Virus record (IMG/VR): IMGVR_UViG_3300023174_000046
Coordinates: 124,001-188,000 of that record
DNA length: 64,000 bases
Direction: 5' to 3' (one strand)
How positions within the stretch are numbered: position 1 is the stretch's first letter; each line of letters starts with the position of its first letter. The notes beneath the pieces were generated by a model, which made no database searches, had not been told where the DNA came from, and saw nothing but the letters and a program-made list of their open reading frames with translations. Of the stretch, positions 1-33,400 are shown piece after piece. Made by a program: the position numbers and the translations under genes.

Positions 1-3
1 GGG

Positions 4-2259
4 TTGTTTAAAGAAATTAACCCTGTAGGTGTTGGCCCCGATGGTAGCAATCAAGGTGATTTTATTTCTCAAGATGAATTAAACTTTTTTAATTTTACTG
101 GTGGTCGTGGTGGACTAAACGGTACTGGTCGCAAAGGACTCTCTTATAATCAATTTAACGAACTAAGATCAACACAGAAAAAACCGTGTATGATACTTGA
201 TGGGTATGTATTTTACGATATAACGGACGGTTATAATTTTAATTACTCAGTACCTAATCCTGACAAAAGAGTGTCTGGTGTCTTTACAAGAACTGTAACT
301 CAAATACCACCAGGCAGCGGTTACTACACATCTGGACCCAGTATTCTCTCTGCAGCACCCGATCCATATATTAATTATAAAATTTCGTTTCCTTATTCTG
401 CACCACCTAGCTTTAAGCCACTACCAACACCTTTGCTTCTTGTAGCGTACGGCAAAGGTCATTTTGTGCCTGATGATTTTTGCGATGTTAATACTGTAAG
501 TTATTGTTTAGTGTTAGATTGTGTTACCTTTCTCGATTCACTGAGCAATGCAAGATTAGACGTATCATCTGATTTACCTTCATGGTCAACCGCTATACCT
601 GTATATTACAGTGAATTACTCGAAGGCAGCTTAACAACTTCACTAACTAAGCCAAACAATATAGATAGAGCTACCTTCTCTTACACATACCCCGCTTCCG
701 CGCAAGTAATACAGGAGTTAAATGGTTACAGGTTTAATCTTCAAGGACAAACACCTTGCGCAGTGAATAATACTGCAATTACACCAGGATTGGATTACAA
801 TATTGATAATTCAAGCTTTGTAAACTTGCCTGTTCTGCCTGCTTTTGAAACCAAGGTTCAAGACTTATCTACTTCTCTTATTGGCAACAAAACCATTTAT
901 GCAGGCCGTAACGAAGTAGTTGGTACTATGTATTACAAAAACGCTAATACCTCACGGGTAGATCTCATTCAAGATGCACTATCTTCTGTTTTTGCAAAAT
1001 ATCCAATAGATGTTCAAAATAATATATCACAAGGTGTAATCAACTTTGATCTCATTTTCAATGTTATTTTCATTGAAACAGTTAATTATTTTATAATTGA
1101 TAAATTAGACTATGATTACGAACAAAATAATGTTGAACCGTACAATAGCGATAAAAATTTCTTACCTACATACATAGTAGATAAAAATATTGAAAAAATA
1201 AGCAATATTTTCTATAATGAAAAATTAAACGAAGTTGTCTTTACCCGCATGGTATTGCTACCAACAATGAGTGCCAGCAATTTAAAGATTATCTACCCTG
1301 AAATTTATAAAATTGATATAACAACCCCGGTAATTAAAAAACTTTATCCAAATTTTGAATTAACTTATAATAACTTATCGAGCTTTATTCATATTGACGC
1401 AGATACAAATGTTGAGCGAATTGATAAGCCTATTATTTCATATAATGAAGATTCAAAAACATATCTAATAAATTATCTTGCTAAAGATAGCAATAACGTA
1501 TTTTTTAATGTTTTTGAAGAATTTCAAATAAAGAATAGTGATATTATTTTCTTACAAAACGTATTCTATAAGCCTGAATACTTTATTAAAGATTATAATT
1601 TTACAGTTATCAATTCAATAACTGCACTCCAAGGCAATTTACTAGCCGGTACACTTTCATCTTTTCAAAATATCAATACACACACATATTGGTTCTGTAT
1701 TTCCTCTGAGCCTATAGTTATTGTTCCTGAATACATTGTTTGTTCTTATGGTATAGCGTTTGAACCAATAACTACTCCTGTGCCTACACCTTCTGTGACA
1801 CCAACAGTCACACCAACACCAACACCTACACCACCACCAACACCTACACTTCCTCCGTGGACCAATACATGTTCCACTTACAGCATCCAAGTTAGCGGGG
1901 CAGGTCTACTTGCAGCAAATGGCATGTATATTTTCTCTGCTGGTGACACTCTATTTTTCAGTGATTCATCACAATTTACTGTATTTTATCAATCAACAAG
2001 TGACTCGCGTTTCTTCGTAATCTTTGACAATGCATATCCTACAGCCAACAACGTAATTAAAGCTGTAGTACTTTCTGCAGATAATACTTACAGCAATCAA
2101 GCTTTCTTCTATGCAAGCACAGGGTTGATTCTTGATTATGCCTGTGTACCTTACGGTCAATATGGTGTTAGATCTGCCTTGGATCCAGTTTATCTTGAAA
2201 CATTGAATCTCTCCGGTATTGCACCATATCCAACAGTTTCATTCTTTAGTATGACGTAA
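4..2259 (+). CDS. Large probable virion/baseplate-associated protein, likely 5'-truncated, with a Pro/Thr linker and a C-terminal beta module
   Basis: ORF open from the window edge; Asn/Tyr/Ser/Thr-rich; [26 protein letters not shown] linker followed by a VSGAG..ANGMY module. Confidence 0.6.
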   Translation: MFKEINPVGVGPDGSNQGDFISQDELNFFNFTGGRGGLNGTGRKGLSYNQFNELRSTQKKPCMILDGYVFYDITDGYNFNYSVPNPDKRVSGVFTRTVTQIPPGSGYYTSGPSILSAAPDPYINYKISFPYSAPPSFKPLPTPLLLVAYGKGHFVPDDFCDVNTVSYCLVLDCVTFLDSLSNARLDVSSDLPSWSTAIPVYYSELLEGSLTTSLTKPNNIDRATFSYTYPASAQVIQELNGYRFNLQGQTPCAVNNTAITPGLDYNIDNSSFVNLPVLPAFETKVQDLSTSLIGNKTIYAGRNEVVGTMYYKNANTSRVDLIQDALSSVFAKYPIDVQNNISQGVINFDLIFNVIFIETVNYFIIDKLDYDYEQNNVEPYNSDKNFLPTYIVDKNIEKISNIFYNEKLNEVVFTRMVLLPTMSASNLKIIYPEIYKIDITTPVIKKLYPNFELTYNNLSSFIHIDADTNVERIDKPIISYNEDSKTYLINYLAKDSNNVFFNVFEEFQIKNSDIIFLQNVFYKPEYFIKDYNFTVINSITALQGNLLAGTLSSFQNINTHTYWFCISSEPIVIVPEYIVCSYGIAFEPITTPVPTPSVTPTVTPTPTPTPPPTPTLPPWTNTCSTYSIQVSGAGLLAANGMYIFSAGDTLFFSDSSQFTVFYQSTSDSRFFVIFDNAYPTANNVIKAVVLSADNTYSNQAFFYASTGLILDYACVPYGQYGVRSALDPVYLETLNLSGIAPYPTVSFFSMT

Positions 2260-2270
2260 TAAATAACTAG

Positions 2271-2741
2271 ATGGCAACGCTACCATACATATATGCCGAT
2301 TCATTATCAGGTTCTATCAAATATCTCGGAGAATGTTATGTTACAACAGGTAATAGCGGCATTATTAATGCTAAAAAAGAAGAATTTGTTGATTCACAAG
2401 ATTGTAATATCTGCTTAGGCCAATCGCCTTTCCCTTTACTTACACCAACACCTACAATTTCCCTTACACCAGATCCTACAAGAACTGTCACACCAACACC
2501 TACTGTAACTCCAACCGTGACCCCTACAGTAACACCCACTGTTACTCCTACGGTAACACCAACTGTTACACGCACACCAACACCTACAGTAACACCCACT
2601 GTTACTCCTACGGTAACACCAACTGTTACACGCACACCAACACCCACGGTAACACCGACAATTACCATCACACCTACAATTTCTCTTACACCTACTGTTA
2701 CACGAACACCAACACCTACAGTAACACCTACTAAACCATAA
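2271..2741 (+). CDS. Small protein with a Cys-containing head and a mucin-like (TPTV)n tail
   Basis: N-terminal CY...DCNIC, then about 100 aa of PT/TV repeats; TAAATA 5 nt upstream of the ATG. Confidence 0.75.
2523..2644 (+). repeat. Perfect 60-bp tandem duplication within the PT-repeat coding region
   Basis: Sequence lines starting at 2521 and 2581 are identical except for one base. Confidence 0.9.
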
Positions 2742-2744
2742 TAT

Positions 2745-4187
2745 ATGAACCTTTCAGCATCCAGATCCTTTTCTCTATTACCTACAGATCAATTATCGCC
2801 CGAAAATGACATTCTTGTTTCATTTGATTACGTAACAAATGTTTATGATAACTATCAAAATGTTTATGATAATGAAACACCGTCTGAGGGGTTTTGTTTG
2901 TTTTTTTACGAGGGCAATGCACCTCTTGGTGGTGGTGCGCCTGGTTCTGGCTTAGGGTATCTCCCCGACTCTTTTGCTGTAACAAATAATAATAATATTC
3001 TTTTTAGCGAATTTAACAATACTTTTATATCTTATAATCTCACAGCATATGGTACAGTCAATAACATGCCCGCATATAGAGGTGACTCATCTAGATTGAG
3101 CGGTGCTAAAATCGATTTTTATACTTCAGGTTACAATGGTCTCTTTCCTAGTACTTCCGGTTGGCGCATCTGGGATGGTACAAACAAATATTTTTACTAT
3201 AGTGACAGTAATGTATTGTATCCAATGTGGGCTGTTAACTGGAATAATGGGCCTGATATTCAATCGGGCTGGGGATACCCTTTAATTACCAGAAAAGATA
3301 TTGGATACAGTTATGCAGGTAAAGCTGGAAGCTTATTGGGAATTGGTTTTGATTTTACTGGTAATTTCAGAACCGCATACAACTCACCTGTGACAGGAAG
3401 CCCTGTTATTAATAATGTTACTATTAGAAACGGTGATTATACCTACCTCACAAATTCAACCAATCTTACTTCCACAAATTTTTTATACCCAACTATTCTT
3501 TGGAATAGTTTGACAAATAGCGGTCTACCCAATATTGGTAACCGCGTAAAAGTTAGATTAACGGATCTCGGCAGAACTATTAATGTAAAAATGCGCCCCT
3601 ACGGCATTGAGGAATACGTGGATGTATTAACTTATAGTTCTTTAAATTTAGGCCCAGGAAATACAACAGATAGTATTAAAGTAGGTTTAAATTTTTCTTC
3701 ACTTAATAATACAGATTTCGGTATTCGTAATTTCAATATTGCAGGGGTAGCTGCAACACCTACTGCAACACCAACACCAACATCAACAGTTACACCAACT
3801 GTTACACCTACACAAACAGTTACACCAACTGTAACACCTACACGAACTGTGACACCAACACCTACACGAACAGCTACACCAACAGTTACACCAACAATTA
3901 CTATCACGCGCACCCCAGGTATTACACCGACTGCAACTCCAACAGTTACACCTACAGCTACTGTCACACCAACAGCAGGCGCTACATCCACGCCTACACC
4001 TACTGTGACACCAACTGCAACACCGCCACCTTCACAGACACCTACTACAACACCAACACCTACAGTTACAGTAACTGCAACACCAACACCTACTGTGACA
4101 CCTACACCAACTGCGCCACCATCACCGTTCCCTGACGGCACTGTTCTGGCCAACGGTGTTATTGTTGGATTTGGAAGAACCCCATAA
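2745..4187 (+). CDS. L-type (legume) lectin-like domain with an inserted module, plus a long Pro/Thr stalk
   Basis: [18 protein letters not shown] and LLGIGFD..GNF match lectin-fold motifs and are separated by about 110 aa; PT repeats at about 3751-4125. Confidence 0.65.
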
Positions 4188-4199
4188 ATATCTTAATAT

Positions 4200-5642
4200 A
4201 TGGCAACAAATATATACAATCCAATTAATTTAGTTTACAGTACTAATACCTGGACAGGTGTTGATAATTCTTTAAGTGGTGGTGATACTTACAGAACACT
4301 CATTCACGATATTGTATATTCAGGGAGCAATCTTTTCTTTGGTGGTGCGTTTATATATGACTACACAAATGCAAACAACCTGCCCAGCTATCAACTGCCC
4401 ACTGATAAGAAAATACAAGTTATTAACATAGGATATTTTGATACTACAAGCAACCGCATACGCTCCATAGGCGGTATAGGGACACGCGTACAGGTTTCAA
4501 GCGCACAAACAGTAAACCAAAATACAGCCATATATAGCATGGCAATGAGCGGTAGCAATCTTGTTGCAGCAGGTAACTTTAATTTAATTAATACACAAAT
4601 TACAAGTTTTGAATGCACATCTGCAATAAATAGGACTCAATTTTACACACTTTCAGATACCATACCGTTTAATGCAAATGTAACTGTGGGGCAAGTTATC
4701 CATTTGTCTGCTTATAATTTACTATTCACATCTCTTTTTACAAACTCGTTACCTGGAATATGCTTCACTCCAAGGTTTTCCGGAGATTATGCAGATAGCA
4801 TTGCATACTACAGCTCTTCGAATCAAAAATGGAACGCGTTCCCTAACAGTACAAACGTTTCTTTTGGTCAATCAGCATATGCAGTAGAATTTTACAACAA
4901 CAGAATATACACTGCAGGTGCATATCTAAGCGGCACTATTTTCTATAATGATGGTACTACTTGGCAACAAGTAACGCCCAACATGGCAGCTAATAGAAAT
5001 TCGGATGCAACATGTTTGAAGCTATACAACGATCAACGTGGCAATCTTATATACTGCGGAACATTTTCTGGATTTAATGGTGATTTGAAAAAAACTGGCA
5101 TAATGGGGTATGACGGTAGCACATTCTTTGCTCTTGGTTCAGGCTTATCCGGTACTGCACCATATGCAGGTAATGTTGTTTTGTCGGGCGATAACTACAT
5201 TGCTGCTGGTCTTTTTGATGATCGTATTGCATATTGCAACCGATCAACTAATTCCAATTTTAAAAGTTTTTATAATGGTACAAATAATTTTGCATCTGAT
5301 GCATATGTTCTTTCAATTGCTCTTTCTGGCAGTACACTCATATTTGGTGGTTATTTTTACAACCTCAATTCTGTTGCAACTACTGTTGGTGCCGTTGATA
5401 CTGCCGGTAACATCACAAATCTTGGTGGGTTGATTGATGATAACGTGTACAATTTCGGCCCCGTGCCAAGAATAATGTTAGCAAATGTGCCAGTTAACTA
5501 CACCCTTGCTTCTTCAATATCAGGCGACTTCACTACTATAGATCTTCAAACATCACGCGATATTCTGGGTACAATTTCAGGTCTCTCCGCGTATGGTAGC
5601 TCACCTTATCAAGGTGTTAGCGGTATTGATGTAACTCTATAA
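4200..5642 (+). CDS. Beta-propeller probable virion protein
   Basis: Repeated blade motifs (SGSNLFFGGAF, SGSNLVAAGNF, SGDNYIAAGLF, SGSTLIFGGYF, YNDGTTW). Confidence 0.6.
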   Translation: MATNIYNPINLVYSTNTWTGVDNSLSGGDTYRTLIHDIVYSGSNLFFGGAFIYDYTNANNLPSYQLPTDKKIQVINIGYFDTTSNRIRSIGGIGTRVQVSSAQTVNQNTAIYSMAMSGSNLVAAGNFNLINTQITSFECTSAINRTQFYTLSDTIPFNANVTVGQVIHLSAYNLLFTSLFTNSLPGICFTPRFSGDYADSIAYYSSSNQKWNAFPNSTNVSFGQSAYAVEFYNNRIYTAGAYLSGTIFYNDGTTWQQVTPNMAANRNSDATCLKLYNDQRGNLIYCGTFSGFNGDLKKTGIMGYDGSTFFALGSGLSGTAPYAGNVVLSGDNYIAAGLFDDRIAYCNRSTNSNFKSFYNGTNNFASDAYVLSIALSGSTLIFGGYFYNLNSVATTVGAVDTAGNITNLGGLIDDNVYNFGPVPRIMLANVPVNYTLASSISGDFTTIDLQTSRDILGTISGLSAYGSSPYQGVSGIDVTL

Positions 5643-5675
5643 TAGCATTTTACACTTATTGTAGTAAAATAAAGT

Positions 5676-6932
5676 GTGGAAAATATTTTTATACAGATTG
5701 CTGCCTATCGCGACCCACAACTAGTACCAACTTTACGTGACTGCATTAAGAATGCAAAGTTTCCTGACAGGCTAAGATTTTGCATATGCTGGCAACATGA
5801 TGAGAAAGATAGCTTGGAAGAATTTGCTACTGATAAACGGTTTACTATTCTAGATGTACCATATCAAAAAAGCCAAGGTGTTTGTTGGGCAAGAAGTACC
5901 ATTCAGAATTATTATCGTGATGAAAAATATACACTCCAATTGGATAGCCATCATCGGTTTACCGAAAACTGGGATGATACGTTAATAAAAATGGTCAAAC
6001 AATTGCAAAAGAAAGGACACAGAAAGCCTCTCCTTACCGGGTATATTCCTAGTTTTGATCCAGATAACGATCCCGGTGCACGTATTCATGTGCCTTGGAA
6101 AATGAATTTTGATAGATTTATTCCTGAAGGAGCCGTTTTTTTCTTACCTGCATCAATTGACAATTTTAAAGAATTAAAAGAACCTATTCCTGCTAGATTT
6201 TATTCAGCACATTTCTGCTTTACATTAGGTCAATTCTGTAAAGAAGTACCACATGATCCTAATTATTACTTTCACGGTGAGGAGATTAGCATTGCAGTGA
6301 GAGCGTTCACACATGGATACGATTTATTTCATCCACACAAAGTAATTATTTGGCATGAATATACTAGAAAAGGCAGAACCAAACAATGGGACGATGATAA
6401 AGATTGGGGCAAACGAAATGAACAATGTCATCTACGCAATCGTAAACTATTTGAAATGGATGGTGAGAAAAAAGATATTGATTTCGGACCATACGGCTTT
6501 GGTGATAAAAGAACTCTTAAAGACTACGAAAAATATGCTGGTCTTAATTTTAAGAAAAGAGCTGTGCAGCAGTATACAGTAGACCATCACTTAGCACCAA
6601 ACCCATATACATTCAAAAATGAAAAAGAATGGGAAGCGTCTTTCCTTCAAATCTTTAAACATTGTATTGATATACGATACGATCAAGTGCCTGAAAAAGA
6701 TTATGATTTCTGGTGTGTAGCTTTTAAGGATAAGGAAGGCAAAGATGTATTCCGAAAAGATGCGGACAAAGACGAGATTCAGCGCATGTTTAATGATCCA
6801 GACAAGTACTGTAAAGTTTGGCGAGAATTTAATTGTGAAACAATGCCTGTGAGTTGGTTGGTGTGGCCACATAGCATAGGCAAAGGTTGGGCTGATCCTA
6901 TTACAGGTAGGATAGGTGACAGGGCTAGCTAA
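5676..6932 (+). CDS. GT60-family (PF11397 GlcNAc) polypeptide/hydroxyproline alpha-N-acetylglucosaminyltransferase-like enzyme
   Basis: IFIQIAAYRD, GVCWAR, LQLDSHHRF..WD, FHGEEISIAVRAFTHGYDLFHP, WHEY motifs. Confidence 0.85.
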   Translation: MENIFIQIAAYRDPQLVPTLRDCIKNAKFPDRLRFCICWQHDEKDSLEEFATDKRFTILDVPYQKSQGVCWARSTIQNYYRDEKYTLQLDSHHRFTENWDDTLIKMVKQLQKKGHRKPLLTGYIPSFDPDNDPGARIHVPWKMNFDRFIPEGAVFFLPASIDNFKELKEPIPARFYSAHFCFTLGQFCKEVPHDPNYYFHGEEISIAVRAFTHGYDLFHPHKVIIWHEYTRKGRTKQWDDDKDWGKRNEQCHLRNRKLFEMDGEKKDIDFGPYGFGDKRTLKDYEKYAGLNFKKRAVQQYTVDHHLAPNPYTFKNEKEWEASFLQIFKHCIDIRYDQVPEKDYDFWCVAFKDKEGKDVFRKDADKDEIQRMFNDPDKYCKVWREFNCETMPVSWLVWPHSIGKGWADPITGRIGDRAS

Positions 6933-6935
6933 CAT

Positions 6936-7514
6936 ATGATAGCGGTACAAATCGGTGCCAATAGAGGCAATGATGAATTTACATCATTAATAAAAAACGT
7001 ACATGTTGATACTCTTGTTTTAGTTGAACCATTAAGTGTTCACAATTCAAGCCTGAACGATTGTTACTCGAATATTCAAAATAAATTTATAGAAAATATT
7101 ATCATTACAGATAAAGAAAATAGCGAGGAGGTTATTTATTTTCATAAGCTTGACGGGCTAGAATACGGTAATAATTATGAATTAGCAAGCCTCAACAAAC
7201 AACATTCTTTAAATATAAGAAATTCTTACGAGGAAAAAGAGGTAATCGCATTAAAGCTGCCCAATTTGACAATCAATAATCTATTGGACAAATATAAATT
7301 ACAAAATATTGATTTGCTATTTATAGACACTGAAGGATATGATAGCAAAATAATTATGAGTATAGATTTCACTAAATTTAATATTAAAGAAATTTACTAT
7401 GAAAATCTTCATATTAACGCTTATGAATTAAGAACATTCTTAAAAGAGAAAAATTATTCTGTAAATGAAGGTGTTTTAACATATGGATGGAATGACAGGG
7501 CAATCAAATGCTAA
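6936..7514 (+). CDS. FkbM-family SAM-dependent methyltransferase
   Basis: QIGANRG, VEP, DLLFIDTEGYD. Confidence 0.85.
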   Translation: MIAVQIGANRGNDEFTSLIKNVHVDTLVLVEPLSVHNSSLNDCYSNIQNKFIENIIITDKENSEEVIYFHKLDGLEYGNNYELASLNKQHSLNIRNSYEEKEVIALKLPNLTINNLLDKYKLQNIDLLFIDTEGYDSKIIMSIDFTKFNIKEIYYENLHINAYELRTFLKEKNYSVNEGVLTYGWNDRAIKC

Positions 7515-8395
7515 CCTTAATAGATAACGGTGATTTTTATGACTGGTCCTGCTGGGGAGGCACGCATAGATATTATAAGAACGAAAAAAAATATTACTGT
7601 GATCGCGATTCAGGCATTTTTTCAAATCTTACCAATATGATGTTTTGTATTGCTTTTTTAGAATTGGATAATAAACCGGTAATTGAACTCGAAACAATAT
7701 TTGGTGAGTATATTTCTTCTGAGAATATATACAGTAAAATCTTTAAAAAAAATTCTGATTTGTTGTTAGATTTAAATTTAATTCAAAATAAGGAAGCTTT
7801 TCTACAAGCACATCCTTCTTACTGGGGAATAGGACAAAATCTAAAAGAAGTAAATTTTAAATTTTATAATAATATTATAAGAAAATTTTTTATGCCTAGT
7901 GATGAAACGCTTGAAATAAAAAATAATTTATTAACAAACAATAGTATAAATTTAGAAAAGAGTGTTTTTTTATGGTGCCGACTAACCGATAAGCGTAGAG
8001 AAACTGTAGTACCGCCAGTATCTAAGTATATAGAGATTATTGAAAAAAATTTCAAAGATTACGAAATTATAGTGCAGACAGATGATATTAGTGTTTTAAA
8101 TGAAATTAAAACATATAATTATAATTTTAAATTTTTAAAAGAAATACCCATTGACAACTCTAACACTTTTGATGGCTGTTTCCACAGTAAAATGTGTAAC
8201 GTTGATGAGGTAGATTTTTACAATAAATACAAAATGTCTAAGGTAGATTACATAAGGCATATGTATGCGGCAGCATTAATCGCTTCAGAAAGCAAATATT
8301 TCATATGTTACCCAGGTAATCCTGTAACTTATGTTCCAATGTTAAAAGGTGATACAGATAATACTTTTTTATTTAAAAATCAGGAGCTTTTCTAA
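7508..8395 (+). CDS. NodZ/GT23-like (fucosyltransferase-fold) glycosyltransferase
   Basis: SGIFSN, WCRLTDK, IVQTDD, YFIC..GN motifs; paralogue of 62284-63126. Confidence 0.6.
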   Translation: MLTLIDNGDFYDWSCWGGTHRYYKNEKKYYCDRDSGIFSNLTNMMFCIAFLELDNKPVIELETIFGEYISSENIYSKIFKKNSDLLLDLNLIQNKEAFLQAHPSYWGIGQNLKEVNFKFYNNIIRKFFMPSDETLEIKNNLLTNNSINLEKSVFLWCRLTDKRRETVVPPVSKYIEIIEKNFKDYEIIVQTDDISVLNEIKTYNYNFKFLKEIPIDNSNTFDGCFHSKMCNVDEVDFYNKYKMSKVDYIRHMYAAALIASESKYFICYPGNPVTYVPMLKGDTDNTFLFKNQELF

Positions 8396-9261
8396 TGGAT
8401 ATACTTGTACAGCATAATTTTAATACCGGTCTTGGTGATGGGTTATTTGCTATGACAGAATATCTCACAAACATTAAGGCTTTAAAAGAATATGGGTTTA
8501 GCGCTAAATTGCATTTTAATCTAAGTAGAAATTTATATTTTAAAGAAAAAACACCTCTAGATTACTTGAATAATAACGAATTTAAAGTTTTTGATACTAT
8601 AAGTACCGAGCATTGTGGTATTAATGAAGATACAATTAAAGACTATACATGTGTCTTTACACACGCAAATGCTAATCATAGTCAACACTACTGGGATTTA
8701 TTTGTACATAATTCAGTTTTAGACAAATACCACTCATTCAATTATAAAATTAAACAATTTAATATTAAAGAAATGCTGGCTGGTGTGTTGCCTGATTTTT
8801 ACCCAAAACTTTCTGAACATATTCTCAGTAAATTTAATGAATTCAAAATAAAAAATAATTTAGATGACTATGATGCGATATATTTTAGAACACAAGATTT
8901 ACAAGAAGAATTAGACTTCTTAGAAAACAATAAAAGTAAATTAAAAGAAATACTTTTCGAAAATACCGACAAAAAAATATTTTATTGTTCTAACAGTAAA
9001 GAATTTAAAAAATATATTAAAACATTATCAAGACCTAACCTTTACAACTGGGAAATGCCTTTAGAAGAAGAATGGGGCGGTAACCACTTATTACACCAAA
9101 CAATTGACTCTGAAAATCTACATCAACGAACCATATACACATTATTAGACATGTGGACTTTATGCTCAGCTAAAAAAATAAATTTTTTTACTACGTGGGG
9201 CAGGTATTCAAATTTCTTTATTTACGCCCCTATTAACCACAGTTCAGTAGTATGGTATTAG
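8395..9261 (+). CDS. GT-B fucosyltransferase-like glycosyltransferase
   Basis: GLGD, IYFRTQD, FYCSNS, LDMWTLC..K, SNF motif order typical of GT11/GT23/O-FucT folds. Confidence 0.55.
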   Translation: MDILVQHNFNTGLGDGLFAMTEYLTNIKALKEYGFSAKLHFNLSRNLYFKEKTPLDYLNNNEFKVFDTISTEHCGINEDTIKDYTCVFTHANANHSQHYWDLFVHNSVLDKYHSFNYKIKQFNIKEMLAGVLPDFYPKLSEHILSKFNEFKIKNNLDDYDAIYFRTQDLQEELDFLENNKSKLKEILFENTDKKIFYCSNSKEFKKYIKTLSRPNLYNWEMPLEEEWGGNHLLHQTIDSENLHQRTIYTLLDMWTLCSAKKINFFTTWGRYSNFFIYAPINHSSVVWY

Positions 9262-10184
9262 AAATATCCTCTATCTGTGTAGCTAATGATTGGTATGTTG
9301 GTGAAATATACCAATATATCATTCAACAGTTTATTGAAAAATATCCTAATATAAAATTTAATGTTACAGACAACAAATCTTTTGCCTCAAAATATGATAT
9401 TAACAATGATACCCACAAAAATTCAATAGCTAATATATATAATTTGCTGATATATAATCCTAAAAATAATAAACTATTTGTTAATAGCCTTAATGACTAT
9501 GCACCGTATTGTTTGATGAACGGCACAGGTGTTGAAAAATTTGATTTGGTAGGGTTTGGCTGTGTTTCAAATCATAATCAGTACACTATTGATAGTTTCA
9601 AACCCTACAATATCATACCTTCTTTTTATATTTTAGAAAATATGAGCGATTTCGAACGCATACAAAAGTATAAGAATAAGCCTAGAAAGTTCAACAGTGC
9701 GTATTTCTTAGGTTTACTATATAACAGAAGAAAAGAATACTTTGATACATTTAAAGATAGTGATTTAGTAAAAATTTATAATAAAGATGAATTCTGGAAA
9801 AATAGGGATGATTATTTTTGTGAACTGTCCGATTACAAGATGTCTTTTAGTATGGATGGTGCTGCATTAATTTGTCACCGTGATATTGAATCAATAGGTT
9901 TGGGTAATATTTTAGTTAGAGAGTATCTGGACGTGAGAATGCATGATCCTTTATTACCCAATATACATTATATTGAAGCCGTTACAAAAAAAGAAAAAGA
10001 AACTATGCGAATACAAGACTGTAAAGAGTTAATAATAAATAGAATAAACGATTTTATTAGTAATGAAAAATTAGTCACAGATTATTTAAATGAATGCAGC
10101 AGTTGGTTTCAACGCAATTGCATTCCTGAAAACCAATTTAAAATCGTTGAAGATATAACCAACAGTCTAGAACTCCTTCGTTGA
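9252..10184 (+). CDS. GT-B glycosyltransferase (Glyco_trans_1_2-like)
   Basis: YFLG..RR, LSDYKMSFSMDG..CHRDIE..GLG, LLPNIHYI. Confidence 0.6.
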   Translation: MVLEISSICVANDWYVGEIYQYIIQQFIEKYPNIKFNVTDNKSFASKYDINNDTHKNSIANIYNLLIYNPKNNKLFVNSLNDYAPYCLMNGTGVEKFDLVGFGCVSNHNQYTIDSFKPYNIIPSFYILENMSDFERIQKYKNKPRKFNSAYFLGLLYNRRKEYFDTFKDSDLVKIYNKDEFWKNRDDYFCELSDYKMSFSMDGAALICHRDIESIGLGNILVREYLDVRMHDPLLPNIHYIEAVTKKEKETMRIQDCKELIINRINDFISNEKLVTDYLNECSSWFQRNCIPENQFKIVEDITNSLELLR

Positions 10185-10213
10185 TATATAGAAAAAGCAA
10201 ATAATATATTATT

Positions 10214-10909
10214 ATGTCGTACGATCATATAAAGAAATGGGACGACATTTTTTGTGCACAACATGTTATAAATCTAGTTAACCACATTTCGAGTTTGCTC
10301 TTAAAAAATAATATCAACCAAATAAACTATCTGGATATTGGTGCAAACGTGGGTAAAGTCTACGATTTATTATCAGAAAGAATACCAATTAACAAAGCAT
10401 ATCTTGTTGAAGCCAGTCCCCTACTTTTTAACTATATCAAACAAAAATATACAAATAATTCAAAAGTACAATTGTTTAATTTTGCCGCTTATAACGAAGA
10501 AACAAAAATTCAATTTGATCAATCTTCAATGCTTCATCAATTTGAAACAGATGGATCAAATTTAAATTTAGGTCTTTCTAAAATTCAACACACACCCCAA
10601 TCTGTTAGTATTGATGCAAAGCGTGTCTCAACATTTTTAAATGAGCGTCAGCTTTTTAGTGAATTATCTTTTATAAAAATAGACACTGAAACAGTAGATT
10701 TCATGATACTTGAAGATTTGCTAAAAGTCATATCGTTATTTGACGTTAAACCACTTATTGAATTTGAAAAAAATCATTTCATACAAGGCTTGAGCGATGA
10801 ACAAGCTCAGCATATACTTGATAAATTTGTAAACTATGGTTATAAACCATTGAATTTAGGTCAATGTTACGGCGACGGGCTGTTAATACCGGAAGGGTTT
10901 GTAGAGTAA
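10214..10909 (+). CDS. FkbM-family methyltransferase
   Basis: LDIGANVG, VEA, FIKIDTE. Confidence 0.85.
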   Translation: MSYDHIKKWDDIFCAQHVINLVNHISSLLLKNNINQINYLDIGANVGKVYDLLSERIPINKAYLVEASPLLFNYIKQKYTNNSKVQLFNFAAYNEETKIQFDQSSMLHQFETDGSNLNLGLSKIQHTPQSVSIDAKRVSTFLNERQLFSELSFIKIDTETVDFMILEDLLKVISLFDVKPLIEFEKNHFIQGLSDEQAQHILDKFVNYGYKPLNLGQCYGDGLLIPEGFVE

Positions 10910-10910
10910 T

Positions 10911-12575
10911 ATGAATAATTTAACGTTAGTTACAGGTATTTGGGATTTAAGGCGCGACCAAGCGGGTGAAGGTTTTAAGCGACCTTTTACCCATTATATT
11001 GTAAAGTTTACCGAACTCCTAAGAGCCGCTAAAGAATACAATATGGTTGTTTATATTGAAGAAAAGTATAAAGATTTGGTATTGAGTATAAGAGATCCAC
11101 AAAATACACAAATTCGTATAAAAGAAGTTGATGAGTTCAAAACAAGCTTTCCTTTTTACGATAAAATTACAGAAATAAGAAATAAAGACAGTTGGCTGAA
11201 TCAAGCTGGTTGGTTACGCGAAAGCACGCAAGCAACTATGGAACTTTATAACCCCATGGTTATGTCAAAGTTGTTCATGCTTCACGACGAAAAAATTAGA
11301 AATTCTTTTAATACAGATTATTTTTATTGGATTGATGGTGGGTTAACTAGCACTGTGCATCACGGTTATTTTTCAAAAGAAAAAATATTAGACAAAATAC
11401 CAAAAATTACAGATAAATTTCTTTTTATAGCATTCCCTTATGCAGAAGGAGATGAGATACATGGGTTTACTAGAACAAAAATGAATGAGTTGGCACAAAC
11501 AAAGAATGTAGAGTATGTTTGCCGTGGAGGTTTTTTTGGTGGTCATAAGAATAATATATCGGACATTAACGGTATATATTACTCTCTTTTAAGCAGTACC
11601 CTTAATGACGGATACATGGGCACAGAAGAAAGCATCTTTACCCTCATGACATATACTCACCCGCACTTGTTTGCAAAACATATGATAGATGGCAATGGCC
11701 TTGTTGGTAAATTTTTTGAAGATATTAAAAACACACCATTTACTGAAAATAAAATTACACTAAATAATTATTCTGGTGTCAACTTATATGTTCTATCATT
11801 TAACTCACCAGAGCAGTTTGAGAGATTAATTGAAAGCTATTTAAAGCAACCTGGGTTTGTGCGTGAAACAAAAAATATTTTAATAGATAATAGTACAGAC
11901 CCTGCAGTTAATGACAAATATGTGGAGCTTTGCGCAAAATTTAATTTTGAACACATTAAAAAAGATAATATAGGTATTTGTGGTGGAAGACAATTTGTTG
12001 CAGAGCATTTCAATACTACTGACGCAAAATATTATATGTTTCTTGAAGATGATATGAATTTATGTGATGAAAATTTTAAATTTTGTAAAAACGGATTTTC
12101 AAGAAATATCGAAAATCTTTACTATAAGATTCAAAAAATTATGGATAAAGAAGATTATGATTTTCTTAAGCTCTCATTTACAGAGTTTTTTGGTGATAAT
12201 ATGACCCAGTGGTCGTGGTATAATGTACCGCAGTCTATAAGAGAGCTGTACTGGCCAGGTAAAGTTAAACTACCTGTAATAGGATTAGACCCTAACGCAC
12301 CGAAGACAGTTTTTAAGAATATAGGCAGTGTAGATGGTTTAAGTTATATTGATGGTGAGATATACTATTGTAACTGGCCTCAAATTGTATCGCGAGCTGG
12401 CAATAAAAGAATGTTTCTTAGCACTAAATGGGATCATCCCTTTGAGCAGACATGGATGTCTTATATGTATCAGCTAACTAAGAGAGACATGTTAAAAAGC
12501 GCAGTTTTGTTAGCGTCACCTATAAATCATGAGAGATTTGCCTTTTATAAAAGCGAAGAGAGAAGAGAGAACTAA
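10911..12575 (+). CDS. HtrL/YibB (WlaTC)-like glycosyltransferase fused to a GT-A domain
   Basis: N half: TLVTGIWD, FNTDYFYWIDGG, GGFFGG, GTEE. C half: IDNS, NIGICGGRQ, FLEDD. Confidence 0.7.
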   Translation: MNNLTLVTGIWDLRRDQAGEGFKRPFTHYIVKFTELLRAAKEYNMVVYIEEKYKDLVLSIRDPQNTQIRIKEVDEFKTSFPFYDKITEIRNKDSWLNQAGWLRESTQATMELYNPMVMSKLFMLHDEKIRNSFNTDYFYWIDGGLTSTVHHGYFSKEKILDKIPKITDKFLFIAFPYAEGDEIHGFTRTKMNELAQTKNVEYVCRGGFFGGHKNNISDINGIYYSLLSSTLNDGYMGTEESIFTLMTYTHPHLFAKHMIDGNGLVGKFFEDIKNTPFTENKITLNNYSGVNLYVLSFNSPEQFERLIESYLKQPGFVRETKNILIDNSTDPAVNDKYVELCAKFNFEHIKKDNIGICGGRQFVAEHFNTTDAKYYMFLEDDMNLCDENFKFCKNGFSRNIENLYYKIQKIMDKEDYDFLKLSFTEFFGDNMTQWSWYNVPQSIRELYWPGKVKLPVIGLDPNAPKTVFKNIGSVDGLSYIDGEIYYCNWPQIVSRAGNKRMFLSTKWDHPFEQTWMSYMYQLTKRDMLKSAVLLASPINHERFAFYKSEERREN

Positions 12576-12587
12576 TTAAATAATAGT

Positions 12588-13277
12588 GTGAATACAGTTG
12601 TAGTAAACCTATCTTCTAAGCAAGATCCTGGCGATATTGTAATGTACAACCATTACTGGTTTTCAGATCCTCTATCCGGCACAAATATTGCATACCCAGT
12701 TACTGCAAATGGTGATTTCTTTACATACAGTACTACTCCTACAGTAACAGCAGATGATGGTAACTTTTTTCCATGGGGATATATTTTCCAAGACACATCT
12801 GAAACTATATATGCGGGCAAATACAAAGGCCTTACAACTTTGAATATCAATGCGTCGGGCCTATCAACTGATTATTTTCCCATCTTGCGTATATATTATG
12901 ATTTTGGTGATGGTGAAGTATACAATAACTCCAGAAATGTATTAATCGATTATTCCAAGCTTGCTATTGACTCTTTTATCAATGGCTATGGTTACGGCGA
13001 TCCCAAATTTGTGCCTGTAAACCATACCTACCAACCAAGTGATACTACTTTCACTGTTACCTATACAGCGCATGTACAAGTGTTTAATGGTAGTTTGGTT
13101 ACCAACAACTTCTTCATTATAATAGACTTAGTACAAGATTCTATATTTGATTTTGATGATATAAATCTGTTAGATACAAAGTTCATATCATTATCTGATA
13201 AAACCATCATAAACGTGTTAGAAGCCTCTAAACCTGAATATATTCTAAATAATCTTTTAAAATATAGTAATACCTAG
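12588..13277 (+). CDS. PKD-like probable structural protein
   Basis: YDFGDG...VNHTY PKD signature; TAAATA 5 nt upstream of the GTG. Confidence 0.55.
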   Translation: MNTVVVNLSSKQDPGDIVMYNHYWFSDPLSGTNIAYPVTANGDFFTYSTTPTVTADDGNFFPWGYIFQDTSETIYAGKYKGLTTLNINASGLSTDYFPILRIYYDFGDGEVYNNSRNVLIDYSKLAIDSFINGYGYGDPKFVPVNHTYQPSDTTFTVTYTAHVQVFNGSLVTNNFFIIIDLVQDSIFDFDDINLLDTKFISLSDKTIINVLEASKPEYILNNLLKYSNT

Positions 13278-13305
13278 AAAGTATTGAAATTCATAAATAT
13301 TTTAG

Positions 13306-16300
13306 ATGGAAATCAGACCTTTAAATAAAACTACATTCCCGTCATTGAGATTGCAGTATAGTCTTGATTCAACGGTAAATGTAAACAGTGATAATTTCGA
13401 AAACGAGCAAAATCTTGATGTTCTTCTTAATAATTTCTTAAGCGATGCACGTGATGCATCTTCTAATAAATACAGCAATTTTTATTTAACAAATAGGGTC
13501 AATTTAAGTCAAAATATTGAGTTCAAAGAACTAGCAAACCCTGAAGTAGAAGTATTCACAACATGGTTAGCATCTGATGCTGACAGACAATTAAACACAA
13601 AAACAGATTTTTGGACCATTGGAACTGATATTGAAGGGGCAACGACACTGCAGGATGTCGCAGCCTCAGGTATTTTTGTTTCAATTGACAATACATATAT
13701 TTTTGATGTAGAGTTATTAAATGAAAAAGTTTGTAGGGTAGGCCACACCTATAATAACTATACAAGATATCTGACCATAAATTATCTCAACGCAACAGGT
13801 AATAGCTTTTTTTGTCTCAATAACGGGCAAGATCCTTATGATTTAAATTCTACACAAACGTTTTGCTATTTGTATGATAGGAAAAATGATTTTATTGTTC
13901 TTTATAAACTTATAAATGATATTGCTTATATTGTCTATACATTTGAAACTACAAAAGATATTTCCCTTGCAATACCCCTTACATCAGATGATTTTGGGTT
14001 TACGAACGATCAAATTTATAGATGCAGGGCACGTTTTGAATCTGCAAACAAACCAATTGTCAATAGCATATGGGCACAATATGAAAAAGGATTCAAGGAT
14101 AATAATTTAACAATCGACGATAGACCTGCACCATACAATATCTACTGCCCATCATACGCAAGCATTGATACAAACTTTCTTGTTAACACAGAATACTACA
14201 ACCTTTCTAATAATACATTACCGATTAACATATTAACTCTTAAAAATACAACCACACCCGAAAATTATGAATCGAAAAATAACCCTTTTGCGGTAAGAGA
14301 ACCTGAAATACAGCAACGTCAATACAGAAAACTCTTTACCGGTACAAATCAAATCGGTGGTTATGATAACATCAGACTTAGTTACGAAACATTTACAAGT
14401 CAGCGCAAATTTGAACCTGATAAACTAACATATTTTCATGCACCACAAGATTTGTTTCCATACTTGCAGCTTAATATTAAAGATACAGGTTTGATTGAAA
14501 GCGGGTCTATAGCAGGTGACCATCCTCTAAAATCAGATAAAATTTTTAAAAAGAAAGCCGGGTACAAGTATACCTCTCCGTTTGGTAATGCGAGTAATGA
14601 ACAAAATGGTTCTTTTCTTTGCTCTTGGCTATCGGGAGCTGACAGCATAACAACTAGACCCATATGGTTAGACCGGTATTATTTTCCTGACCAAACAACT
14701 TATCTTGCTGCTATGACAGCTGCGGTTAACCCCTTTATTAATTATATTTCAGAAGTGCAGGGTGTAAGAAATGAGCTTCCGTTTTTAAAGCAAGTTGTGG
14801 TTGATATACCTAGCCGGTTAGCATTTGAGCCTGGCGTGCAATATGCATATCATCATATTGGTAAAAATACAACAAATCAACTAATAGAAACTCTTGATAA
14901 TGTATTGTTTGAAAAAAATTTACCTGTCTACACAAATACAACATATGATGTTCTTACTGGTGAGCTAATAGATCAAGAACAACAAGAGTATGTTTTTGAT
15001 GGTTTTCGTTACGGAAAAACAGATCGCATATCAAGTCCTGGAAACTTCAACCAATTCACATTAAACTTTTACATGTATGTGAATGATTGGCAGTCTAATT
15101 TCGGTAATCAAATTATTGGCAATTATGTTAATGATGGATTTGGTGTATACAATACAAACTACGTTACACCGTTTATTACTTTACTTTCACCATCCGCAAT
15201 TAATATTTTTAATACAGATGGTATACTAGCAGATAGAAAGTCTTTTGATTCTAAAGTCACCAATATTTTTAAGTATGATCAATGTGAAGATTATTTTGCT
15301 GTAAAAGCAGATAATATTGTTATTAGAGTTGATACAGATAATGTCTCGTTAAACAAGTATGCTTTTGGGAATATAGGCAGCTCACGATCTATATACACAT
15401 TTAACGATAATTTAGCTTTTGTATTAACAGGCAGTCAATCCAATGCTTTTTATTGCATTAACACTGATACAGGTGGCTTGTCCGGTTACAACCAAACACC
15501 TTACCTTTACGATGCTGCAAATATAATTGATTTTACAAATACCGGGTTTTTAAATATTCTTACACACAAAAAACAAATTTATGTAATACAAGGATATTCA
15601 CCACAAATACTAAACAACGACATTTACTTTAGTTGGGGCAACTTCTTGTGGCAATTCAATACAATCACTAAAGAGAGATATTCTGCATACAAATTTAACA
15701 CACTAATTGACTTTAATGTTGATTTAGATGGTAATTTATGGGCTTTGCATGATAGTAATAAAATTTCGAAACTTGACACATCAGTAGATAAAAATGTTTT
15801 ATTTACAAAAACATTAGATCTTTCAGGCACCTTTTCGAATATAGATTTACTTTCCTATTTCCAGGGCAATGCCTACAAAAAAGAAATGTTAGTCTATTCA
15901 CGTTTAAGTGGGGCTGATCCTAAATTAAGAATGGATAAGATTGATTATGATGGCAATGTCGTTATGACAACATTGCTCCCTAGCTACCTCTCTGCTTCTG
16001 TTACTGATAATAACGGAATTACTTCAAAAACAGATACAACAGGTGGTGATTATGCAAGATACTATGTAAAAGAACAGTACCCCAAGAATAACTTGTCTGC
16101 AAAAATTAGATTAAGAAATGTTTATGATTTCGGTAAAACAAGAAAAATTGATTTGAAGTTTAATCTCTCTGCTGTGGACATTGGTTATCACCATGTGAGT
16201 GTCAGAGCTGATACATATAAAGGTATCATGTCGCTATATTTTGATGGTGAGCTCGTAGGGAATCAATATTTTGAAGAAAATAACTTTATCTTTAACAATC

Positions 16301-19450: not shown

Positions 19451-19464
19451 CATTAAATATTTTT

Positions 19465-23399: not shown

Positions 23400-23401
23400 G
23401 C

Positions 23402-24893: not shown

Positions 24894-24895
24894 TT

Positions 24896-27992: not shown

Positions 27993-28016
27993 TATTATAA
28001 GTAGTTATTGTAGTAT
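27989..28016 (+). promoter_or_regulatory. sigma70-like promoter opening the amidinotransferase operon
   Basis: TTGATA-N16-TAGTAT, 6 nt before the ATG. Confidence 0.6.
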
Positions 28017-28022
28017 AAACTT

Positions 28023-30527: not shown

Positions 30528-30528
30528 C

Positions 30529-33397: not shown

Positions 33398-33400
33398 TAC

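Follow-up and report, generated by a model that had tools for sequence, protein, structure and literature searches.

The window, i.e. the whole 64,000-nucleotide stretch of viral DNA analysed here, combines genes for proteins with long proline/threonine (PT) repeats with a block of putative sugar-transferring enzymes, which raises the question of whether the phage glycosylates its own PT proteins. A phage-encoded soluble cytoplasmic protein O-glycosylation module using the PT tracts as acceptors appears to be the best explanation, to which we assign a somewhat better than even chance.

PT tracts and the proteins carrying them

A six-frame scan revealed exactly five PT tracts in the window, each of them on the + strand and in the reading frame of an ORF, and thereby recovered the stalks in three consecutive genes and two further ones where the preliminary description had placed them:

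1756-1887, + strand: PT tract 1, 44 aa
2427-2738, + strand: PT tract 2, 104 aa
3741-4148, + strand: PT tract 3, 136 aa
36731-36904, + strand: PT tract 4, 58 aa
42783-42899, + strand: PT tract 5, 39 aa

The tracts (39-136 aa) sum up to 381 residues including 150 Thr and 100 Pro, and their DNA consists of imperfect tandem repeats with a period of 12-60. The ORFs containing them are regarded as candidate acceptors:

4-2259, + strand: PT ORF, C-terminal 751 aa of a 1273-aa protein begun upstream of the window
2271-2741, + strand: PT ORF, 156 aa, (TPTV)-type stalk at 2427-2738
2745-4187, + strand: PT ORF, 480 aa, PT tract at 3741-4148
36695-37129, + strand: PT tract and ~70-aa tail in the -1 frame of the membrane-protein gene 35904-36716
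42333-43946, + strand: PT protein beside gp15, 537 aa

In ORF 4-2259, which yielded no family match, the tract (1756-1887) is followed by a ~120-aa domain. ORF 2271-2741 consists of an N-terminal part of ~50 aa and a stalk reaching the stop codon, and a single TAA separates it from ORF 2745-4187 in the same frame. The latter comprises a ~330-aa globular head without match in PDB, Pfam or PHROG, the 136-aa PT tract and a short C-terminus; its family is the commonest PT-protein family near GT60 genes. Judging from the sequence, the PT ORF at 36743-37129 most likely extends, through a frameshift, the integral membrane protein encoded at 35904-36716. ORF 42333-43946 encodes an N-terminal domain, the PT tract (42783-42899) and an RCC1 beta-propeller, in this order. 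None of the window's PT proteins matched a known virion protein in PHROGs, Pfam or the PDB, and the earlier labelling of the first three genes as structural-type could thus not be substantiated.

Upstream of the enzyme block large proteins are encoded, among them one with a PKD domain, tail-fibre genes are located on its other flank (18752-21399), and gp13, portal and gp15 were detected at 38-42 kb of the window. Fibre-like proteins commonly contain PT linkers, glycosylated or not.

The GT60 enzyme and its tandem GT-A partner

The block and its immediate neighbours comprise the following genes:

4200-5642, + strand: 480-aa protein, in only 5/80 GT60 loci
5676-6932, + strand: GT60/PF11397 GT-A glycosyltransferase, predicted initiator (Pfam, PHROG, motif, predicted fold)
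6936-7514, + strand: FkbM-family methyltransferase, lineage-variable accessory, in 12/80 loci
7508-8395, + strand: probable GT-B fucosyltransferase-like enzyme (NodZ/FUT8/O-FucT-like), Atlas lead only
8395-9261, + strand: probable GT-B fucosyltransferase-like enzyme (NodZ/FUT8/O-FucT-like), Atlas lead only
9252-10184, + strand: probable GT-B enzyme (Glyco_trans_1_2/GT90/RXYLT1_C-like), Atlas lead only, in 22/80 loci
10214-10909, + strand: FkbM-family methyltransferase, lineage-variable accessory (Pfam, PHROG and NCBIfam searches)
10911-12575, + strand: GT60 partner, tandem double GT-A, predicted extender, 554 aa (Pfam and AlphaFold model)
12588-13277, + strand: 229-aa protein, after the partner gene in 16/80 loci

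The proposed assignment of ORF 5676-6932 to GT60 was confirmed by its match to PF11397 (E 8.6e-72; 242.9 bits at a cut-off of 21 bits), together with a match to phrog_24687 (E 7e-178), the invariant DxH motif (D90-S91-H92) and the predicted fold, for which the PDB ranks 1-21 were all polypeptide GalNAc-transferases of the GT27 type (E ~1e-9). An extra conserved beta-rich domain forms the C-terminus (residues ~324-412). The DxH variant of the metal motif is specific to GT27 and GT60 (PMC7185993), the latter comprising polypeptide alpha-GlcNAc-transferases by which mucin-type glycans are initiated (PMC8724618).

Among the four additional glycosyltransferases that had been suggested for the block, the one at 10911-12575 was recovered by Pfam, its N-terminal half matching HtrL_YibB, and by an AlphaFold model with two tandem GT-A domains, the C-terminal one of which carries the invariant residues E379-D380-D381. 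According to fold comparison its architecture is best matched by LH3, ColGalT1, K4CP and LARGE1. The other three (7508-8395, 8395-9261 and 9252-10184) are exclusively language-model leads (Atlas) without match in Pfam, PHROG or NCBIfam. The domains of the two predicted FkbM proteins were found by profile search; ORF 4200-5642, initially described as a propeller, gave no family or PDB match and contains only four GG-x-F-type motifs.

The view of the seven genes as one glycosylation block holds for a part of it. The partner was detected in 74 of 80 viral GT60 loci and in 32 of 80 bacterial ones, in four of them within the same ORF as GT60, and the pair is also present in Xanthomonas and Stenotrophomonas jumbo phages (full-length partner: XacN1, E 4e-140; RAS14, E 8e-125). 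The seven genes, however, are not retained as a whole: relatives differ in the genes for FkbM and the three GT-B-like proteins (3-22 of 80 loci), and in other loci a carbamoyltransferase, UDP-galactopyranose mutase, RmlD and DegT are among the accessory enzymes. What is conserved as a functional unit is the GT60 enzyme with the 554-aa tandem GT-A protein.

Linkage between GT60 and PT-repeat proteins

The anticipated co-occurrence of GT60 and PT genes was observed as an enrichment in viral contigs and as adjacency in bacterial ones, but about half of the loci are devoid of PT tracts. A PT tract lies within 10 kb in 36/80 viral GT60 loci and in 11/80 portal-seeded controls, leaving 44 of the 80 viral loci without one at this distance. 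Strict criteria gave 31/76 viral GT60 loci versus 4/35 controls (Fisher p = 0.002), and in the reverse seeding GT60 was found in 12/120 (TPTV)3-seeded loci versus 0/80 controls (p = 0.002), locus-level p-values which overstate independence because the loci are kin. After clustering the seeds at 80% identity the viral enrichment was not significant in what is an underpowered comparison (11/21 versus 2/5 clusters). With the tracts masked, the PT proteins near viral GT60 fall into ~35 unrelated families. The physical linkage of GT60 to PT-repeat proteins is supported in several phage lineages.

It is clearest, and likewise supported, in contigs from bacterial assemblies of many phyla. On these a PT protein is encoded within 10 kb in 23 of 55 long loci, more than half of the bacterial GT60 loci having no PT tract at this distance. 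Within the positive loci the PT gene is adjacent (<=500 bp) in 14/27 (binomial p = 2e-11) and, counted by phylum-level group, in seven of nine (p = 5e-8). A high-GC case checked by eye revealed a same-strand operon of a PT-tailed protein, GT60 and the partner. In a crAss-like phage GT60 has on one side a PT protein of 673 aa and on the other a structural protein of the muzzle type that carries a PT tract. The PT neighbour found in Burkholderiaceae, ~3.7 kb off, is VgrG, which contains a (PT)n linker; this proximity may indicate a spike-cargo rather than an enzyme-substrate relationship.

Alternative targets of the enzymes

The enzymes might glycosylate proteins but not the PT tracts, their targets being host proteins or, like those in mycobacteriophages, capsid or tail proteins, with the adjacency resulting from shared variable fibre regions or, in Burkholderiaceae, from T6SS islands. 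The polypeptide-glycosyltransferase-like fold would suit such targets equally, as would the VgrG context, the many GT60 loci without PT tracts and the glycoprotein bands of unnamed proteins in XacN1 (PMC5852040). This scenario nevertheless seems unlikely taking into account that unrelated PT proteins are immediately adjacent in seven phylum-level groups, that simple three-gene operons consist of PT protein, GT60 and partner, that ~35 unrelated PT families occur beside viral GT60 and that the documented acceptors of protist GT60 are mucin-like Thr-rich domains (PMC8724618).

A remodelling of host envelope polysaccharide (LPS O-antigen, capsule or EPS), for example against superinfection, would render the PT proteins unrelated neighbours, in line with the absence of nearby PT tracts from about half of the GT60 loci. 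HtrL_YibB owes its name to a gene located in the LPS-core region of E. coli, NDP-sugar enzymes (GLF, RmlD, DegT, epimerases) are among the recurrent GT60 neighbours, and glycosyltransferase clusters of large phages have been read as modifiers of outer polysaccharides (PMC7824862). However, no protein of either sugar block of the window, enzymes included, contains a TM-like segment, and neither block gave a match to a flippase, polymerase, ABC transporter or initiating phosphoglycosyltransferase. Since furthermore the fold of the initiator is closest to the polypeptide-modifying GT27, the substrates of the characterised members of GT60 are proteins (PMC8724618, PMC7185993) and the immediate PT adjacency across many phyla would be left unexplained, we consider an envelope target quite improbable.

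The same module and acceptors could also operate via hydroxyproline instead of Thr, a phage 2OG-Fe(II) oxygenase hydroxylating Pro and GT60 adding GlcNAc in the way Gnt1 modifies Skp1. The Skp1 hydroxyproline GlcNAc-transferase is a member of GT60 according to the Pfam PF11397 description and the references listed in PMC8724618, the tracts are rich in Pro, and 2OG-FeII_Oxy_3 accounts for two recurrent GT60 neighbour families. Yet the PhyH-family dioxygenase gene of the window (30529-31308) is located 24 kb off in another block, a prolyl 4-hydroxylase is not consistently found beside GT60 and many bacterial operons are so minimal that they encode nothing but PT protein, GT60 and partner, which makes this linkage very unlikely.

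Sugar hypermodification of phage DNA against restriction, as by the T4 alpha-/beta-glucosyltransferases and recent phage GT-A/GT-B DNA glycosyltransferases, is hardly probable at all. In its favour, the partner shows a weak match of its C-terminal domain to phrog_842 (beta-glucosyl-HMC-alpha-glucosyltransferase, E 6e-4), the invariant R360, E379-D380-D381 and E425-F426 of this domain bear a superficial likeness to the R...DDD...EDY/F motifs by which DNA-modifying phage GT-A enzymes are characterised (bioRxiv 10.1101/2023.12.21.572611) and the XacN1 cluster lies near DNA polymerase and RNase H genes. However, thymidylate-synthase-like hydroxymethylase, TET/5mYOX and C5-methyltransferase are absent from the 25 best-scoring or most frequent of the 56 Pfam families matched by 58 recurrent GT60 neighbour families, as well as from that part of the window which is annotated. 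In fold, GT60 comes nearest to the peptide-binding GT27, and the PT adjacency would remain unexplained.

Proposed module and comparison with known systems

In the favoured O-glycosylation of PT tracts, the retaining GT-A enzyme encoded at 5676-6932 would use its DxH metal site to transfer the first HexNAc to Thr hydroxyls of the PT tracts of phage proteins, by analogy with protist GT60 and animal GT27. This sugar would most likely be alpha-GlcNAc drawn from the host UDP-GlcNAc pool. The tandem double GT-A protein (10911-12575) is predicted to add the next sugars, and lineage-specific accessory enzymes, here the three GT-B-like and the two FkbM proteins, may then diversify or cap the glycan. 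Both the lack of TM-like segments in the enzymes of either sugar block and the Schiff-positive glycoproteins of XacN1 virions (PMC5852040) speak for this reading. The PT tracts presumably act as extended linkers joining globular modules, which dense O-glycans would stiffen and protect from proteases; both effects, like methyl capping, are conjectural. Likewise, the sugar donor, the residue that accepts it, the structure of the glycan, the timing and the presence of the acceptors in virions are predictions.

The GT60 enzymes of Dictyostelium and T. cruzi, including Skp1 Gnt1, share with the phage enzyme the Pfam family PF11397, the DxH motif and a GT-A fold near GT27. Pro/Thr-rich mucin-like acceptors, candidates in the phage, are common to both (PMC8724618, PMC7185993), and T. 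cruzi gp72 contains a PTVTPT-type domain very similar to the window tracts (PMC3630849). In contrast to its protist counterparts the phage enzyme, whose activity is predicted, is soluble, lacks a membrane anchor and possesses the extra C-terminal beta-rich domain; the tandem GT-A partner is absent from the protist pathways. Animal GT27 enzymes, the nearest solved structures, also have the DxH motif and glycosylate Thr/Ser in Pro-rich tandem repeats (PMC7185993), but share only 10-14% identity with the phage GT60. They are Golgi-resident and use UDP-GalNAc, whereas the phage enzyme is cytoplasmic, probably uses UDP-GlcNAc and has no demonstrated ricin-type lectin domain.

In XacN1, ORF334 (50% identity) and ORF330 represent GT60 and partner and adjoin a 3313-aa PT-containing protein, itself encoded after baseplate wedge genes. 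The virions of XacN1 exhibit Schiff-positive glycoprotein bands; the authors identified neither these glycoproteins nor the partner gene or the PT link (PMC5852040). XacN1 belongs to a different phage lineage, and its accessory enzymes are a carbamoyltransferase and a GT9.

Mycobacteriophage glycosyltransferases reportedly O-glycosylate phage proteins in the host cytoplasm (Freeman et al. 2023, Cell Host Microbe, cited in PMC12619734). They resemble the module in that their genes adjoin structural genes, but there the sugars are reportedly attached to the C-terminal ends of capsid and tail-tube subunits instead of PT stalks, and hosts and lineages differ. In Gram-positive serine-rich-repeat adhesins a long low-complexity Ser/Thr repeat is primed with GlcNAc in the cytoplasm by GtfA/GtfB and extended stepwise by neighbouring glycosyltransferases including a two-domain one, a mode of working similar to that proposed for the phage module. 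However, GtfA/B are GT-B enzymes (GT4) acting on Ser-rich acceptors instead of the Pro/Thr repeats that are the candidates here, and the accessory Sec export coupled to adhesin glycosylation is absent from the phage module.

The tandem GT-A architecture of the partner resembles the two-domain enzymes LH3 and ColGalT1, which glycosylate collagen hydroxylysine, K4CP, LARGE1 and heparosan synthase, although identity amounts to ~10% and the global TM-scores of ~0.26 are low because the domain arrangement differs. The partner may either add two sugars or polymerise a disaccharide.

The recurrence of GT60, partner and PT tracts in phages and bacteria points to a candidate for an undescribed prokaryotic and viral protein-glycosylation system.

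The predicted initiating glycosyltransferase and its genomic setting

The window belongs to a 217 kb IMG/VR viral contig (IMGVR_UViG_3300023174_000046; window position equals contig position minus 124000) of a T4-like myophage, as indicated by the portal protein (PF07230, E 4e-100), gp15 and gp13. The glycosyltransferase block is located between a PKD-domain protein and other large proteins and the tail fibre genes, i.e. among the virion structural genes, and the gene surroundings of GT60 in crAss-like phages and in the Xanthomonas jumbo phage XacN1 resemble those in the window. This location agrees with virus-encoded virion protein glycosylation of the mycobacteriophage and chlorovirus type, for which glycans on the virion proteins are a further criterion. 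The region 1-13500 gave no match to cultured phages in a megablast search, and the cultured-phage search detected a GT60 homolog in only four isolates. The T4-type late promoter TATAAATA was rarer than expected (5 matches versus 10.5), and thus gave no sign of late co-expression.

Furthermore, a TnsA-like endonuclease gene is inserted in the neck module between gp13 and gp15 (41112-41615), and an HNH-like ORF is located on the minus strand (51914-52372). Two products of the region 55565-58641 are unusual for a phage, namely an 810-aa protein carrying a PATR repeat of the autotransporter type and, after it, a 222-aa protein whose N-terminus has a methylation motif like that of type IV pilins.

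ORF 5676-6932 (+) is predicted to encode a GT60 polypeptide glycosyltransferase, the donor and acceptor being presumed by likeness to the protist enzymes. The assignment to GT60/PF11397 in the preliminary description was borne out by an HMM match spanning nearly the whole profile (242.9 bits, cut-off 21, E 8.6e-72), by the DxH motif and by a GT27-like fold. The ORF also matched phrog_24687 (E 7e-178), PF11397 is present in the precomputed annotation of its homologs, and D90-S91-H92 was invariant in an alignment of 30 diverse homologs. The AlphaFold model (pLDDT 89.6, pTM 0.85) had GT27 polypeptide GalNAc-transferases at PDB ranks 1-21, the alignments covering 440-470 columns, and matched “Glycosyltransferase, GlcNAc” proteins from uncultured phages and giant viruses in the viral structure library. 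GT60 is set apart from GT27 by the absence of the C-terminal ricin-like lectin domain. The phage enzyme carries a conserved C-terminal β-rich extension of ~100 aa (about residues 324-412) outside the Pfam domain.

Only GT27 and GT60 have DxH in place of DxD, and polypeptide Ser/Thr O-glycosylation is common to the two families; GT60 is found in prokaryotes and protists, and the prokaryotic sequences stand in the databases without assigned function (PMC7185993). In Dictyostelium and T. cruzi, glycans of the mucin type are initiated by GT60 enzymes, which are polypeptide α-GlcNAc-transferases (PMC8724618). The family is very large, with at least 7,701 proteins at E <= 0.001 among 8,000 candidates scored, and nearly all homologs are located on metagenome contigs. 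It is also well conserved, the best 80 viral loci being 66-100% identical.

Pro/Thr-rich proteins

A six-frame scan revealed five Pro/Thr (PT) tracts and no more, all on the plus strand and in the frame of the matching ORF, within a few bases of the positions originally reported:

4-2259 (+), PT protein, tract at 1756-1887
2271-2741 (+), PT protein, tract at 2427-2738
2745-4187 (+), PT protein, tract at 3741-4148
36695-37129 (+), PT protein, tract at 36731-36904
42333-43946 (+), PT protein, tract at 42783-42899

In total, the tracts hold 150 Thr and 100 Pro per 381 residues. The tract DNA consists of imperfect tandem repeats, and since a 60-nt unit is present in two copies that are 97% identical, tract length is evolving. 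O-GlcNAc probably modifies a (PTVT)n spacer in the Dictyostelium protein PsA, a case not counted as evidence here.

The PT proteins and ORF 4200-5642 had no match in Pfam, PHROGs, NCBIfam or PDB sequence searches. Hence, neither the label “propeller” for ORF 4200-5642 (family and PDB matches) nor the label “structural-type” for the PT genes (Pfam, PHROG and PDB) found support. The head domain of 2745-4187 retrieved itself alone in a single-sequence scan, and its family comprises four full-length relatives. ORF 2271-2741 is a PT stalk up to its stop codon, and 2745-4187 follows in the same frame with one TAA between them and the ATG directly after it (window 2739-2747). Since the counterparts of both ORFs sit in different frames in three relatives (L003-L005), readthrough between them is not required. 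The N-terminus of the RCC1 protein (42333-43946) was flagged by the hydrophobicity scan, but it is acidic and no signal peptide.

ORF 35904-36716 encodes an integral membrane protein of 270 aa whose middle part is a coiled coil, and its end reads ...A AAA AAA AAG TAA (A-run 36704-36712). Relative to this ORF, the -1 frame holds a PT ORF, open from 36695. The A9-A10 run and a -1-frame PT ORF of 135-141 aa are kept in relatives down to 66% identity (L085, L086, L088, L089) and are missing from relatives at 37% identity. The region 35904-37129 is a candidate for programmed -1 frameshifting or transcriptional slippage, by which the PT ORF would extend the membrane protein.

On the minus strand of the same contig, outside the window (L164:3066-7163), a 1365-aa protein is built like beads on a string, with four PT tracts between repeated modules; two of the modules end in the LamG/ConA-like C-terminal signature GEF[IV]AY.R.LTP.EL...YL.SKWG. 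Such an arrangement fits the picture of heads on stalks. The “virion glycocalyx” of the preliminary description is unproven, because the PT proteins of the window are candidate and not established virion components, and one of the PT ORFs seems to be an extension of a membrane protein.

Linkage of GT60 to PT proteins

The core of the original interpretation, a functional link between the GT60 initiator and PT-repeat proteins, is supported, and its strongest evidence is the adjacency of both genes in bacterial-genome contigs. One genome per species was scanned, and the best 80 (39-70% identity) of 171 GT60 relatives were analysed; these come from nine or more phylum-level groups and collapse to 53 clusters at 80% identity. 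Under strict criteria a PT protein was present in 23 of 55 bacterial loci of at least 15 kb. It was located within 500 bp of GT60 in 14 of 27 positive loci (binomial p = 2e-11 versus uniform placement) and, counting one event per phylum-level group, in 7 of 9 (p = 5e-8).

In a high-GC case from the Gemmatimonadaceae, which was read directly, a same-strand operon leads from a PqqD-like protein, which contains a hydrophobic segment and ends in a PT/Ser tail, via GT60 to the partner, the homolog of the tandem glycosyltransferase encoded by ORF 10911-12575 of the window. At this locus (L301:8458-9958) the PqqD-like (RiPP-recognition-like) N-terminal domain of the PT-tailed protein and an HPr-kinase-like P-loop protein encoded before it were recognised by eye from the sequence. 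Some of the “bacterial” GT60 contigs are in fact of phage origin, as with the crAss-like region from Saprospiraceae, where the neighbours of GT60 are a PT protein of 673 aa on one side and a muzzle-type protein, likewise with a PT tract, on the other. The module of a Jiulongibacter isolate comprises GT60, a carbamoyltransferase and an FkbM-partner fusion, a composition as in XacN1. In seven Burkholderiaceae loci (L310, L333, L337, L339, L347, L350, L361) a VgrG with Phage_GPD, gp5_C and OB domains and a long C-terminal (PT)n linker is encoded ~3.7 kb from a GT60 homolog matching in the catalytic domain only, in the context of a type VI secretion island. As this proximity could represent a spike-cargo relationship, these cases were left out of the adjacency count.

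Among viral contigs, in which the loci are related to one another and the statistics are per locus, a PT tract was located within 10 kb in 36/80 GT60-seeded and 11/80 portal-seeded control loci, with 4.3 versus 1.5 PT proteins per 100 kb. Restricting the comparison to loci of 12 kb or more and applying strict criteria gave 31/76 versus 4/35 (Fisher p = 0.002). Reciprocally, GT60 was detected in 12 of 120 loci seeded on (TPTV)3-encoding DNA and in none of 80 portal-seeded loci (p = 0.002). The proposed co-occurrence in viruses thus held per locus but not after collapsing the seeds at 80% identity (11/21 versus 2/5 clusters, not significant), a comparison without power because the portal-seeded loci reduce to five clusters. 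No PT or other Ser/Thr/Pro tract was present within 10 kb in 44 of the 80 viral GT60 loci, the compared loci spanning at most about 21 kb. With the tracts masked, the 88 PT proteins of GT60-bearing loci formed about 35 unrelated families; therefore the tract, and not one syntenic gene, is common to these loci.

In XacN1 and the Stenotrophomonas jumbo phage RAS14 a giant PT-containing protein adjoins the cluster, after the baseplate wedge genes (PMC5852040 supplement). XacN1 virions gave at least two Schiff-positive bands (PMC5852040, Suppl. Fig. S4); they are the sole experimental support, and an indirect one.

The conserved enzyme pair

The 554-aa partner (10911-12575, +) has an HtrL_YibB-like N-terminal half according to Pfam, and its model (pLDDT 87.6) consists of two tandem GT-A domains (1-275 and 290-554). 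Its profile had no match among PDB sequences. The best PDB structure matches were LH3, ColGalT1, the chondroitin polymerase K4CP, LARGE1 and heparosan synthase, all of them two-domain glycosyltransferases, and the partner would share with LH3, K4CP, LARGE1 and HS2 the presence of two GT-A domains in one polypeptide. In the C-terminal domain R360, E379-D380-D381 and E425-F426 are invariant; a weak match to phrog_842 was also obtained.

When the proteins of the window were compared with the 80 viral loci seeded on GT60, the partner emerged as the sole near-universal neighbour of GT60 (74/80 loci by phmmer, 78/82 by clustering), often directly upstream of it, in a gene order that differs from the window. 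The full-length pair was also detected in the distantly related jumbo phages XacN1 (E 4e-140) and RAS14 (E 8e-125), and the partner in 32 of the 80 bacterial-genome loci; partner variants of ~780 aa carry an added FkbM domain. In four loci from Vicinamibacterales and Myxococcota (L321, L322, L338, L360) GT60 and partner share one ORF of 999-1512 aa (stop to stop), which looks like a Rosetta-stone fusion and would support functional coupling. The FkbM genes and the three GT-B-like genes of the window were present in just 3-22 of the 80 viral loci. Hence, GT60 and its partner persist from the gene block as first described while these latter genes do not, and the conserved unit should be restated as two enzymes with variable tailoring genes. 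In one phage lineage (L026-L035 and about 30 other GT60 loci) the pair is located near genes for a subtilase (Peptidase_S8), a trypsin-like protease, an HNH endonuclease and a volactin (actin-like). No prior description of the GT60-partner module or of its PT association was found in the searchable literature.

Accessory enzymes and possible alternative functions

The remaining features considered here are:

7508-8395 and 8395-9261, placed consistently among NodZ/FUT8/O-FucT-like enzymes in the protein Atlas
9252-10184, placed consistently among Glyco_trans_1_2/GT90/RXYLT1-like GT-B enzymes in the protein Atlas
18752-21399, tail fibres with Mtd_N and S74 chaperone domains
22095-35096, second modification block: GT8, GT32-like (Gly_transf_sug), radical SAM/SPASM, GT31/Fringe-like, PIG-L family de-N-acetylase, PhyH dioxygenase (30529-31308), tryptophan halogenase (E 8.6e-84) and UDP-glucose dehydrogenase (34320-35096)

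Both FkbM methyltransferases proposed for the first block (5676-12575) were confirmed by profile searches. Of the four additional glycosyltransferases, the partner was corroborated by Pfam and its tandem GT-A model; the other three had no profile match, and their Atlas placements are leads, not proof.

Remodelling of host polysaccharide by these enzymes seems quite unlikely, since the roughly 25 proteins of both sugar blocks contain no TM-like segment, neither block encodes a Pfam family of flippases, polymerases, ABC transporters or initiating phosphoglycosyltransferases, and the initiator is nearest to peptide-modifying enzymes. A Skp1-like linkage to hydroxyproline instead of Thr would agree with the PhyH dioxygenase and with the 2OG oxygenases among the GT60 neighbours, and is considered distinctly improbable. 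Sugar hypermodification of the phage DNA is the least credible alternative and can hardly be expected, since no ThyS-like, TET/5mYOX or C5-methyltransferase protein occurs in the 25 best-scoring or most frequent of 56 matched families (58 recurrent GT60 neighbour families) or among the annotated ORFs of the window, which covers 64 kb of the 217 kb contig. The invariant partner residues, which were compared with the JGT-like R...DDD...EDY/F, and the weak phrog_842 match are generic GT-A features. The recurrent neighbour families listed are mostly NDP-sugar and glycan-tailoring enzymes.

Implications

The likeness of GT60-initiated modification of PT proteins to the SRRP system (GtfA/GtfB) is functional only, as the initiator there is a GT-B (GT4) pair and here a GT-A enzyme of GT60. 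It is conceivable, if unlikely, that GT60 and its partner constitute an ancient mucin- or proteoglycan-type O-glycosylation system widespread in prokaryotes and viruses, in which GT60 would prime the PT stalks and the partner would build a repeating disaccharide, resulting in phage and bacterial “proteoglycans”. The polymerase function is proposed because the modelled architecture of the partner matches that of chondroitin, heparosan and matriglycan polymerases. A uronic acid component may be indicated by UDP-glucose dehydrogenase genes near the module, of which the window has a truncated copy without the C-terminal domain and Jiulongibacter a full-length one. Mucin-type O-glycosylation initiated by GT27/GT60 is regarded as a eukaryotic trait; if the proteoglycan-type reading were true, this initiation would have originated in bacteria or their viruses.

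If the PT stalks are truly glycosylated, a new and large class of glycoproteins from bacteria and phages would be defined (>7,700 homologs scored), a low-complexity feature met very often in fibre-like proteins of phages would have an explanation, and the pair would provide a compact two-enzyme tool to make mucin-like glycopeptides in bacteria. XacN1, with its module, neighbouring PT protein and stained glycoprotein bands, is an existing cultivable test system. A glycan coat that the phage makes itself on exposed stalks could influence its stability and adsorption and the way in which grazers or immune systems recognise it.
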